Part shown: positions 44,037 through 64,000 of the stretch, in pieces
Position numbering within the stretch: position 1 is the first letter of the stretch
How the letters are laid out: every line of letters begins with the position of its first letter
Assembly (NCBI GenBank): GCA_965644315.1
Contig: CBFFRQ010000042.1
Span: 661,042-725,041 of the forward strand
Length of the DNA stretch: 64,000 nucleotides
DNA from: Caecitellus pseudoparvulus
Taxonomy: Eukaryota; Protista; Bigyra: Bicosoecida
Reading direction: 5' to 3'
The notes under the pieces: model-generated
What the model was told of the DNA's origin: nothing
What the model saw: the letters and a program-made list of their open reading frames with translations, nothing else
Database searches by the model: none
Program-made: the position numbers and the translations under genes

Positions 44037-44766
44037 GCAACTGCGCAGACACATTGAGCGAAGAAATGGATACGTGCAATATAGATTAAGTTCTCTCCGA
44101 CAAAAGGGTACAAATAGGATCCAGTGTACAGGAACACTCTGCAGATTGCAGACCTGTGTGCTTGATCTTCTTTGCATTCTTTTGGTTCTTGTTGTCACCC
44201 GCCAAGAAAGCCTGAAGTCTTTCTGATTGTGTCACCCGCCAAGAACTATGAATTCAATTACTTAAGGGTGTGTGTGGTCTCCGTGCGGCGCGGCATCCGT
44301 GTGAGCCTCACCACCATGTCGCCACGCCTGCCCGCAACGGCGCCCAGCACCCGCCCATGACCTGCCGTGCACCTAAACGGCTGTACATACATGGTTAGGA
44401 AGTTCAATGCATTGCAACCTCTTGTTTTCAACCACACTCACCTCACACTTGCTCCTCGAAAGAAGCGGGCTGCGGCGCTCGCTTGCTCAGTACACATATC
44501 TTGCACAGAGCATGGTGAGTCACCATGTGAAGTAAGCTTGTTCTTTTCAGAACATGGTACTTTAATGTTCTTCGTCGTCATTCAGGCGTTCGGCGCCAGT
44601 TGGGCGAGTTGGGCGCGGGTTTCGGCCTTGGCGTGTTGGGGGCGCCGCGGCGACCCCGCGCACACCGCGCCACCCCGCGACCCAAAACGGCCCCGCCGCG
44701 CGTTACGACACTGGAAATTTCAGAATAACATCTTAGAATGCACTATCAACCCGAAGCAAGCTTTTA

Positions 44767-47700
44767 TCACTCACTTTCTTGCTCCTCTGCCGCGCCACCT
44801 CGCCCGGGAGTGAGGTGGCTTGGCATGGTCCAGGCGGCAGGCGTGGCGGCCGTGTAGCGGGCTCGCCGCGCGAGGTCCGCGGCGGGCTGCCCGCGTTCCA
44901 CACCTGCGCCCCGAAGTTGGGCATCTACCACGTGATCAAACACGGCCCCACAGTACCGGATGCACGTTTTCAGGACTTTCGTCCATCCGGGAGGTGCGGC
45001 GACCACCTCGTGGGGCCAGTAGAAACTTTTGCCGTCAGCGGCACCCCCAGAATTCGGGAGCAACTTTTGCCGCAAGGGCCCAGCAAATGCCTCCAGTGCT
45101 TCAGCGGCTTTCACTGGGTCTTGGTCCAGTAGATGGGTCGAGTTTCGGACTGGAACACGCAACCGTTCCATGTGTGGTGCCGTGAGGGCAGCACAAGTTG
45201 CGTGATCCCAGTCCGCACACTCGGGTGCTCCCGTGGGCCACTGACCGCACAGGGCGAGCCGCTTCAGCAGCGCCCGGGTGTTCTGGCATGAGATACGTGT
45301 TCCAGTGTCCAGCTGGCAGCCAGCCTGCACCGCTGTGTGCAGGCTTTCTGGAATGGTGACGTATCTCAGGGGTGGGTGCCGGAGGGCCTCGGCCGTCGGC
45401 CGCCTCGGCACAGCGGTTGACTTTGCCGCTTCGTCACAGTCCTGCATGTTCTGCGCTGCCTCTCGGAAGAACGCCAGACGTTCTAGAGATACTGAGGGGC
45501 AGTCCAGCAGAATGTGGTCTAAAATGAACCCCGCATCGCGTATTTCGGGGTCCAAACACAGAGGACATGCGATATACGGCGTCAGGAGTGCACCCGGATG
45601 CAGGAGCTGCTGTGTCTGCAGCATGAACACCTTCGGCAACCAACTTCTGTCAGGATGACAGGCGGTCCAAGCACTACAGGGAACACTTGGAATCGGATGC
45701 AGTTCCGCGTGTGTTCGCGCTCGGATGTCCAAATGGTGAGGCCTCGGCGAGAGCGTCGGATTCACTCTTTTGTCGCCTGTTTCTCCTCGAGGCGAGTGGC
45801 CCGGGTACTCAGCAGGTAGGAACATGGTCTCCCGGTACATGTCTGTTCTTTGCGTTCGTGCAATGAACAAGTACGACTCCAGGAGGTCCAAACGCTGCCT
45901 CAACGTGAAAGTGGCCGGGAAGTCAACCGACCTGTCGAACCTCGCAGAGGCCACAGGAACACTTGTTGCGACGAACAACTTCGGGCCGTTTTGGGCCGTG
46001 TTCTTGGGCAGCTTTAAGGCCTTTTGGAGAGATCGCATCTCTTCGTGTAGGGCCGTGGTGTCCCGATTTCCGCTCAAATCGTGCCACCTCGCGGCCATGG
46101 CCAGAACGCCGAACACACCTTCGTGGTACCCCAACAGGCGCAACTCAAGTAGGGGTCTGACCGCCCACGGAGTGCCTGTACCGTAAAAGGTGTGCTTTGA
46201 TGCCGCTACGTCTTCCAAAAGTAGGGCCGACGGGACCCTCTCGTCCGGGACGTCCGCGACCATCATTCGGCCCTGCCACACGCTCACCATCAGAACTTTG
46301 AAAGCAGGCGAATCCACCACAGCCTGCTTAAGTGTCCGGACTATGAAACCAATGCGACTTCGCATCGTGCGCATGTGTGTCAGAGGAATACCAGCCGCTG
46401 CAAGGACCGCGCCGTGTTGGACGCGCATCGGATGAAGCTGAAAACCGAACACGGATTTGTCCAGAACACTGCCAACGGCATTGTCGCACATGCGATTGGG
46501 CATGAGCGAGTGTTTGCCAGTGATTGCCAGTGTGTAGTCCGCTGCAGCGACCACTGAGGTCCTCAAAAGGCGGTGCGCTGCCGATGGGGCGAGCCATTCG
46601 GCCGCAGAAATCGCCACAGAAGAATGCCCAGCCATGCTCAAGGTGGTTGCGGCATGTCGACAAGTCACTTTATGCTGTGTGTAAAGCTTGGCCTGTAACG
46701 GTGTTCCTAAGTACTCGTACTCGGCGACGAGAGGAATCCGCTTTCCGTCGACGGTCAGCGCCTGTGACTCCGCAGCAAGGCGTTTCTTTGATCTGACGAC
46801 AAGCATCTGAACTCGGCCCATGCGATAGGAAAGAAGCGGGGATGATCGCATGATCATGATGGCCGACTTGGAGGCGTTGACTCTGAGCCCAAGCAGCGCC
46901 CCGACCCGCCTGACGATGGTGATCGCACGGATCACGGCGTCCGCGCTGTCTACGACGAGTCCCAGGTCGTCTGCGTACAGCGCATGGCTGAATCGGGGTC
47001 CAGTGTGGACTGGGTCCCCCTTTGAATGCAGTAGCTTGACCCCCAGTGTCGGTTTTTCCCCCGTTCCCTCCCCCGGAATGTGGTTCAAGGAGAGCGCACG
47101 GGACACCAGGTCGACCGCGATCTTGAATAGGAGGGGCGAGAGGACGCTTCCTTGCGCTACGCCACTGGTCGCGTGAATGGCCTCGGTCATGCCGTGTTCC
47201 GTGTCGATGCAGACGCTGGCGTTCTCGATGAAATCCACGAGGAGTCGCCTGGTGGTGCGGTCCAGCGGCAGGTGGTCTAACAGCACGCGCAACGCCCTGT
47301 GATCAACGGAGTCGAAAGCCTTTCGAAAGTCGATAAACACGGCGAAAACGGCCAGTGGAGGGCTCTTCTTGGGTCCAATGTCCCGGGAACACGTCGCAGT
47401 CGCTGTTCTCAGTGCTGTTCTTGGTCCTTCGAGCATCGCAAAAACGTGCTCGTGGCACCCGCGGCCTCTGGAGAACCCTGCTTGCTGCGGAGTGATGAGG
47501 CCTTGGACGGCTTGTTCCAGCCTGAATGCAAGAACACTGTTCACCAGCTTGCTCAGCGGGCTCCGGCACACGATCAGCCGGTAGGTCGACGCGACCCCGG
47601 GGGTCTGACCCTTCTTTGCGAGCAGTACTCCCTTGCCGTGGTGCAGCTCCCGTGGCAGGAGACCGTCTCCCTTCACCAGGTGCTGTAGCGTCTCTGCGAG

Positions 47701-63695: not shown

Positions 63696-63698
63696 GAA

Positions 63699-64000
63699 TT
63701 AGGGTGGGGTTAGGGTTAGGGTTAGGGTTAGGGTTAGGGTTAGGGTAGGGGTTAGGGTTAGGGTTAGGGTTAGGGTTAGGGTTAGGGTTAGGGTTAGGGT
63801 TAGGGTTAGGGTTAGGGTTAGGGTTAGGGTTAGGGTTAGGGTTAGGGTTAGGGTTAGGGTTAGGGTTAGGGTTAGGGTTAGGGTTAGGGTTAGGGTTAGG
63901 GTTAGGGTTAGGGTTAGGGTTAGGGTTAGGGTTAGGGTTAGGGTTAGGGTTAGGGTTAGGGTTAGGGTTAGGGTTAGGGTTAGGGTTAGGGTTAGGGTTA
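63699..64000 (+). repeat. Terminal telomere (TTAGGG)n, about 50 units, with a few proximal variants
   Basis: Continuous TTAGGG to the end of the window; variants at about 63705 (tgggg) and about 63746 (tagggg). Confidence 0.99.

Follow-up and report, generated by a model that had tools for sequence, protein, structure and literature searches.

We found that the chromosome end held in a 64,000-nt stretch of the genome of the bicosoecid protist Caecitellus pseudoparvulus (C42:661042-725041; the assembly spans 30.6 Mb and has 215 contigs; hereafter, the window) carries a terminal array of telomere-specific non-LTR retroelements (which lack long terminal repeats), and that this end was very probably built by their successive addition, interleaved with telomerase repeats. 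Positions 44393-63698 are occupied by three minus-strand elements, named E1, E2 and E3, which are stacked head-to-tail with their 3' ends proximal and their 5' ends toward the tip (Table 1). Dimers of (TTAGGG)n gave 47 matches in the window and 0 in 100 shuffles, and the terminal repeats suggest that the end of the window is the end of the contig. An earlier note, made from the letters of this stretch alone, had proposed a terminal head-to-tail non-LTR array with 5' ends tipward; the array is real, and its boundaries lie within a few bases of those proposed.

The junctions between elements and telomeric repeats were tabulated on a sample of loci (20 loci of 10 kb were fetched). The results showed that at 24 of 24 tabulated 3' ends, in every family, the G-strand letters ...GTTAG stood immediately before the element. 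The sense 3' terminus of every family reads AATGCATT-N6-8-CTAAC(C), has no poly(A), and keeps a constant register with the G-strand ...GGTTAG. The palindrome AATGCATT occurred 36 times in 254 kb, where about 4 occurrences were expected, and TTAG was located no more than 14 nt upstream in 30 of these 36 cases. The full-length 5' ends were precise, beginning in the sense direction with AACTTTCCAAATGTC... in E2 and TTCTTCCAAATGTC... in E3, and TTAGGG repeats directly adjoined them. In E2-E2 tandems, merely AG precedes the next 3' end (GGAAAGTT-AG-CTAC), and the same AG joint was found in run X10. The earlier note had placed telomeric sequence at every boundary, which held for the (TTAGGG)3 at 56041 and the (TTAGGG)n from 63699, whereas AGGGTCT at 53102-53108 and GGTTAGG at 44393 are better assigned to the element. 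Full-length E1 copies continue straight through AGGGTCT, which rejects it as telomere. GGTTAGG recurs at the 3' end of other E1 copies, and 4-7 of its letters are kept even beside unique DNA, as at 44393, so that we read it as the terminal sequence of E1 itself.

Mapped across the genome, copies of the elements were found almost solely at contig ends; the enrichment suspected from the window was thus present, and the opposite case, in which most copies are internal, clearly failed. The commonest member was E2; at least 47 of its copies, 1.9-2.93 kb in length, were listed as 100% identical, and all are terminal. Its minus-strand copies all lie no more than 15.1 kb from a contig start and its plus-strand copies no more than 11 kb from a contig end, and therefore every E2 copy has its 5' end outward. 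The E3 family was represented by at least 13 full-length copies with 98% identity, all terminal and 5'-outward. The E1 family comprised three long copies and a 5'-truncation series of 6.8, 5.3, 4.8, 3.8, 3.7, 3.3, 2.9, 2.8, 2.4 and 2.2 kb, whose members all begin at the 3' end (position 1-4), the classic signature of a long interspersed nuclear element (LINE).

E1 is a single open reading frame (ORF), of 2,692 codons by the ORF listing and 2,779 codons stop-to-stop, which contains in this order about ten in-frame 47-aa repeats, a Cys/His domain, an apurinic/apyrimidinic-type endonuclease (APE) domain, an RVT_1 reverse transcriptase (RT) domain and a CCHC motif. The copy in the window lacks the first ~735 nt and a start codon. 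Contigs from three other runs and the copies on C147 and C171 extend E1 past 53108 with the same extra sequence; the E1 of C171 has 735 nt more, up to ...GCGCTTTTGG, followed by telomere repeats, and the first in-frame ATG falls in the part that is missing from the window. The number of 141-bp units apparently varies, from about 10 in the window to about 15 in C171 and about 18 in C147, as judged from length differences (loci L007, L023 and L024). The RT domain matched PF00078 with E-values of 4.8e-24 in E1, 6e-30 in E4 and 1e-31 in E5, the latter two representing at least two further families at other ends, and the YADD motif was invariant in three families. PF03372 scored above its cut-off in E4 (27.7 bits), in the E3 family (24.9 bits) and in the relatives P0003 (29 bits) and P0004 (33.4 bits), and below it in E1 (19.9 bits). 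The APE motifs WN, TEP, GD(F/L)NCH, LDH and SDH were conserved across families, with GDFNCH in E1; a search with the APE domain by itself returned only weak APE/ExoIII matches. No restriction-like endonuclease was detected by Pfam in the elements, and their endonuclease is of the APE type, N-terminal to the RT. The arrangement of protease-like, APE, RT and CCHC parts in a single ORF, which had been proposed from the sequence, is borne out by PF00078, by PF03372 in E3 and E4, by the conserved motifs and by the model of a papain-like fold.

On the basis of that predicted model, we call the Cys/His domain a papain-fold, Josephin-like cysteine-peptidase-like domain. An invariant C..QA...T motif, an invariant His and a PD.P motif are common to four families, with C55, H215 and D234 invariant. 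A five-sequence AlphaFold model reached a predicted template modelling score of 0.72, with a predicted local distance difference test (pLDDT) score of 70-90 in the core. The top matches of a structural scan were Josephin-2 (Z 7.9, 133 residues aligned), the Josephin domain of ataxin-3 (Z 7.1) and a bacterial Josephin-like deubiquitinase (Z 7.0). Among the structural matches listed down to Z 4, nearly all were papain-fold enzymes; all Z values were below 8, which is not decisive alone. Foldseek returned the same kind of matches, with a best, non-significant E-value of 0.03, and no Pfam family matched the domain in E1 or in the other families scanned. The fold model of the N-terminal 260 residues common to E2, E3 and E4 had a pLDDT of only 35.

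The earlier note had described three related elements. E1 and E3 do share protein homology (27-36% identity over APE and RT, with matches in several frames; no DNA similarity), and E2 matches the first 2.2 kb of E3 in colinear order (46% amino-acid identity across 278 aa, and 80% identity in the terminal 170 nt) and has a short E3-like 3' end, but E2 lacks APE and RT. Judged by these comparisons, the stack consists of two divergent autonomous-type families and an RT-less derivative, not of one family. The reading frame of the window E2 is broken at a run of six C. With seven C, the complete E2 copy of L003 has one 755-codon open frame, and the metagenome contig L027 carries an intact 694-aa E2 ORF (P0153). 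Between the window E2 and the variant of runs X5 and X10, 25 substitutions were listed and scored in two frames joined at this homopolymer; 21 were synonymous and 4 non-synonymous, where 26% synonymous is expected (p = 1.6e-9). Because 21 of the 25 are synonymous with the frame joined in this way, the E2 ORF, including its papain-fold part, is continuous and under purifying selection.

Relative to three other copies, the window E3 has about 45 indels, mostly of 1 nt, which are densest in the last 1.4 kb, at a substitution identity of 98.8-99.3%. Contigs of other runs contradict it at three indel sites (56446, 56907 and 56959), and the damage looks like weak consensus near the contig end. The increase of degeneracy toward the centromere claimed in the earlier note did not hold: the proximal E1 is open for all its 2,779 codons, the indels are concentrated in the distal E3, and the break in E2 is a C6/C7 difference. 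In the interval 62300-63400, single-base insertions relative to other E3 copies crowd toward the contig end. About a dozen copies elsewhere match only the last ~730 bp of E1 (88-96%) and then continue with a different common sequence (L011:3687-4120, L012:6662-7480 and L013:4701-5540), which points to another family sharing the 3' module of E1.

Table 1. Features of the terminal array in the window (plain coordinates) and of related sequences at other loci
Feature	Position	Strand	Remarks
E1, autonomous-type LINE, 5'-truncated	44393-53108	-	boundaries read directly
E1 3' terminus	44393-44413	-	plus strand GGTTAGG, 6 nt, AATGCATT; sense AATGCATT-N6-CCTAACC; no poly(A)
CCHC motif CX2CX13HX4C	45499-45567	-	ORF residues 2427-2449; also in relatives P0003 and P0004
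RT domain	46822-47616	-	PF00078, E 4.8e-24; YADD
APE-type endonuclease domain	48646-49548	-	PF03372 19.9 bits (below cut-off); motifs kept
Papain-fold (Josephin-like) cysteine-peptidase-like domain	49816-50628	-	invariant Cys/His; predicted model
In-frame tandem repeat, 141 bp (47 aa), ~10 units	51223-52676	-	other copies apparently carry about 5 and 8 more units
AGGTTAG spacer (7 nt)	53109-53115	+	sole telomere-like letters separating truncated E1 from E2
E2, full-length RT-less partner, 2.93 kb	53116-56040	-	N-terminal region and papain-fold domain kept
E2 homopolymer, C6 in window, frame break	54682-54688	+	C7 in both L003 copies; extra C in X3, X5 and X10 contigs
(TTAGGG)3, 18 nt	56041-56058	+	from E2 5' end to E3 3' end
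E3, full-length copy of second LINE family	56059-63698	-	many small indels
Terminal telomerase-type (TTAGGG)n tract	63699-64000	+	a few variants; probably ends contig
E4 intact 2,223-codon ORF	L014:1447-8115		APE 27.7 bits, RT 6e-30
E5	L001		RT 1e-31
Internal E1-like 3' fragments	C30:253725-254341; C89:60634-61285 and 73170-73821; C18:155122-155185; C91:66555-66790
Related LINE, 3,724-aa ORF	L025:7579-18753		Logan contig of another run; (CCCTAA)3 at 1-18; 5' end toward that tip

The relationships of the RT were analyzed with a profile of the APE-RT region from three families, searched against 1.84 billion representatives. The results showed only a few close relatives, of which those of full length came from a coral metagenome and from one further public run, followed by a long series of generic LINE RTs; word-indexed protein searches gave one match each for the APE-RT region and E2. 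The related LINE on L025 sits at a distance of 7.5 kb from the contig end, where the sequence begins with (CCCTAA)3. Neither DNA similarity of this LINE to the window nor N-terminal protein homology to the families of this genome was found, and phmmer detected no N-terminal homology between the families of this genome and the relatives P0003 and P0004. In an RT tree of 137 rows, without curated R1, Jockey and L1 clade references, the families of this genome and their relatives formed one clade (Shimodaira-Hasegawa-like approximate likelihood ratio test support 99), whose sisters were unnamed metagenome proteins and then sequences of Closterium and Hibiscus; a 'LINE-1 ORF2' of Chlorella vulgaris was among the better-named RT matches. 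Against solved structures, the RT profile scored 118 bits with L1 ORF2p and 96 bits with R2, which a single-sequence search did not separate. These results point tentatively toward the L1 group. As for the R1 clade, neither a separate ORF1 nor a poly(A) was found in the elements, and their named neighbours are L1-like sequences of the green lineage. A TERT gene, which the earlier note had suggested looking for, is present alongside the elements: we found one Telomerase_RBD match (79 bits) in a 1,389-codon open frame, with RVT_1 above cut-off in the part examined.

The array was also compared with public runs, using their assembled contigs. E2 was covered by contigs of four runs (X1, X3, X5 and X10), and tandem E2-E2 joints were found in three. 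The k-mer depth in run X3 was very high for E2, about 3,100-3,500, and 78 for the 5' part of E1, compared with a low 8 and 24 in run X10. The E2/E1 depth ratio was thus about 40x in X3 and 0.3x in X10, a spread of more than 100-fold, and about 5-fold in a marine metagenome. Because the depths differ between runs, the abundance of E2 differs between sources, and a burst of E2 seems to be specific to some strains. The short-read metagenome contig L027 from the European Nucleotide Archive carries telomere repeats, an E2 copy (97% identical), 14 nt of telomere and the 5' end of the next element. Because this independent contig shows the same junctions, general misassembly is very unlikely.

The palindrome of the element termini was also found at host genes in the window. 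In the ankyrin gene, AATGCATT stands 5 nt after the stop codon, and two further genes have AATGCA no more than 35 nt away. Across the ankyrin, kinesin and glycosyl-hydrolase-like genes (16326-16333, 2901-2906 and 30910-30915), the distance from the stop to AATGCATT or AATGCA is 5-32 nt, and the motif is in part common to convergent pairs. A fourth gene and its convergent neighbour have an imperfect copy of AATGCATT in common; the rate expected by chance is about 0.7% per gene. We read AATGCATT as a probable host 3'-end signal that would set the 3' end of the element RNA, and rank below this a role as an RT-recognition or dimerisation palindrome.

Successive addition at the chromosome end could then proceed as follows. 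An element would be transcribed from its conserved 5' end, and its RNA would end a few nucleotides past the AATGCATT signal, within C-strand telomere letters (CUAAC...). These letters could pair with the 3' end of the G strand, ...GGTTAG, onto which the element RT would copy the RNA by target-primed reverse transcription, giving a 5' end toward the tip in the register observed, and telomerase would re-cap the new end. The cDNA of a full-length E2 would end ...GGAAAGTT-3' and could be extended either by telomerase or by the CUAAC end of another RNA, the latter of which would fit the GGAAAGTT-AG-CTAC tandems. Since E2 has no RT, it would be copied in trans. We infer the position of the RNA 3' end, the pairing step, the mobiliser of E2 and the primer, which may be an APE nick or a natural end. 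The structure is compatible with a benefit to the host from elements that extend its chromosome ends. A more specific proposal, which we put forward tentatively and hold to be possible rather than probable, is that the elements are adapted to the terminus: the host AATGCATT signal would cut their RNA to CUAAC, which would pair with the ...GGTTAG-3' left by telomerase, the resulting cDNA would end in an extendable ...GTT-3', telomerase and LINEs would alternate mostly when the tract is nearly gone, and E2, RT-less and with a Josephin-like protease domain, would be an independently evolved analogue of HeT-A.

The alternative that survives best is insertion in the manner of TRAS and SART, in which APE would make its nick at TTAG^GG in duplex (TTAGGG)n, at any point along the tract, the element would insert there and no chromosome end would serve as primer. 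We regard it as a serious competitor whose chances fall somewhat short of even. Such insertion would explain why every autonomous family keeps the catalytic motifs of APE, why the junction register is constant, and why some elements are flanked on either side by long tracts (in L008, 870 nt and at least 336 nt; in another case, 222 nt and 270 nt). It accords poorly with the length of the tracts: among 30 junctions, the proximal telomere tract was no longer than 12 nt in 22, 13-60 nt in 5 and 222-870 nt in 3, whereas terminal tracts measured 300 to 1,800 nt. It also accords poorly with the joins to truncated elements and unique DNA through 4-7 telomere letters, which would be rare under random nicking in long tracts. 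The short proximal tracts and these joins favour short or eroded ends as the target, while the conservation of APE, together with the few elements that lie in long tracts, speaks for nicks in duplex repeats; on balance we lean slightly to addition at short or eroded ends over APE nicking, and both may operate.

A second alternative holds that the stacks were built once by retrotransposition and were then spread and homogenised by recombination (break-induced replication, gene conversion or unequal exchange), so that they keep no sequential record. The order E1-E2-E3 recurs on C151 and E2-then-E3 on several ends, the E2 copies are near-100% identical, and four tandem E2 pairs have the same 3-nt overlap, as expected from such spreading. 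Ends of the same order nevertheless differ in detail: the spacer between E2 and E3 is 18 nt in the window and 10, 24, 66 and 20 nt on C151, C194, C154 and C5, respectively, and E1 is truncated at 8.7 kb in the window versus 4.8 kb on C151. Spacer lengths and truncation points of E1 that differ between ends indicate separate events; together with the more than 100-fold variation of the E2/E1 depth between runs, this makes recombination an unlikely source of the stacks. Misjoining of repeats at the contig end might be suspected from the poor consensus at the tip, the indels in E3 and the C6/C7 error in E2, but it is highly improbable, as junctions of these types recur on dozens of contigs, on the metagenome contig L027 and on contigs of other runs. 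Accumulation of ordinary LINEs in gene-poor subtelomeres, without telomere specificity, would account for the few internal fragments and is just as improbable, given the uniform orientation, the constant GTTAG register, the telomere-complementary termini and the finding of no long young internal copies genome-wide.

Several points weigh against successive addition at the chromosome end. Conservation of the APE speaks for a role of nicking, and priming purely at ends would then be an incomplete account. A few short, mostly old E1-like pieces of 64-700 bp, mostly 75-89% identical, were found at internal sites (Table 1), which may have been left by former chromosome ends or may stem from rare insertions away from the ends. 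The four tandem E2-E2 pairs overlap by the same 3 nt, for which template switching or unequal exchange may be responsible, and all assembled copies are near-identical; either recombination or a polishing of the repeats could account for both. No intact E3 ORF was seen among the copies read. The transcript ends of the elements and their activity are things that we infer, and the junctions of the window itself are supported by analogy only, through identical junction types elsewhere. As a separate observation, the two E1-like fragments of C89 are an inverted pair, 12 kb apart.

Retrotransposons specific to telomeres have been recorded in insects, Giardia, Chlorella, a lizard, a few fungi and rotifers (PMC10088271). 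No case from a stramenopile or a similar protist was found in the 2023 list of telomeric retrotransposons (PMC10088271) or in the literature searched, and the present elements are telomere-specific non-LTR retrotransposons, a known class, in a protist lineage without such a case in that literature. TRAS1 and SART1 of Bombyx mori, from the R1 clade, are similar in that they have APE and RT, lie in telomerase-type repeats in one orientation and a fixed register, and coexist with host telomerase (PMC10088271). Unlike them, the elements described here have one ORF rather than two, with no gag-type ORF1, no poly(A) and very short spacers, and they have an N-terminal papain-fold domain and an abundant RT-less partner. 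The HeT-A, TART and TAHRE elements of Drosophila also form head-to-tail terminal arrays with 5' ends tipward and join onto truncated elements and onto unique DNA, as happens in end healing. E2 resembles HeT-A in being abundant, RT-less and presumably dependent on RT-encoding relatives. The differences are the presence of telomerase and TTAGGG, the lack of a poly(A) junction, a retained protein that is not a zinc-knuckle Gag, and another host lineage. The Drosophila type of end, with no telomerase and no short repeats, is thus not what we found, since TERT is present and (TTAGGG)n caps the arrays.

MoTeR1 and MoTeR2 of Magnaporthe and the FoTeRs of Fusarium resemble the present system in lying in TTAGGG telomeres, in combining an RT element with a shorter partner sharing its termini, and in coexisting with telomerase (PMC7367193, PMC12857005). 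They differ from the elements found here, which are of the APE type. The MoTeR and FoTeR elements are described as CRE-like, with a restriction-like endonuclease. Athena and Coprina, which are endonuclease-deficient Penelope-like elements, are terminal elements whose short telomere-complementary 3' stretches can pair with G-overhangs and which are re-capped by telomerase (PMC8557442). Unlike those of Athena and Coprina, the RT described here matches LINE RTs, and APE is present. The non-LTR elements NeSL and Utopia-1_TSP encode an Ulp1-like cysteine protease and are of the restriction-like endonuclease (RLE) type (PMC4640811). In NeSL-1 and Utopia-1_TSP, one ORF likewise places a cysteine-peptidase domain, comparable to the predicted one of E1, upstream of the RT (PMC4640811), whereas their protease is Ulp1-like (C48), their endonuclease an RLE and their targets spliced-leader or U2 genes, compared with a Josephin-like domain, APE and the telomere here. 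Zepp of Chlorella and GilM and GilT of Giardia are likewise LINE-like elements of an alga or a protist lying head-to-tail at telomeres (PMC10088271). In contrast to this likeness in arrangement, no close sequence relationship to them was found, and the clade of this genome grouped only with unnamed metagenome sequences. To our knowledge, neither Zepp nor GilM/GilT has an RT-less coding partner or a protease domain.

These elements add a GC-rich marine protist lineage that retains telomerase to the hosts of telomere-specific retrotransposons, with chromosome ends that resemble those of the fruit fly and the silkworm, yet in an organism that has kept telomerase. In this system, several divergent LINE families come together with an RT-less partner under selection, a papain-fold domain and termini compatible with the telomere. 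The near identity of its copies, and copy numbers that vary from strain to strain, mark the system as young, and this youth could make it an experimental model of how a chromosome end is shared by retroelements and telomerase, of how HeT-A-like dependence originates, and of whether LINEs, by healing ends, serve generally as a back-up when telomeres are short.

Proximal to the array, the last host gene encodes an RCC1-repeat protein and ends at 44036, 356 nt ahead of E1. Across 30000-48000, an interval that takes in the final genes ahead of the array as well as E1's 3' half, the GC content drops from about 0.65-0.70 to 0.56-0.60.

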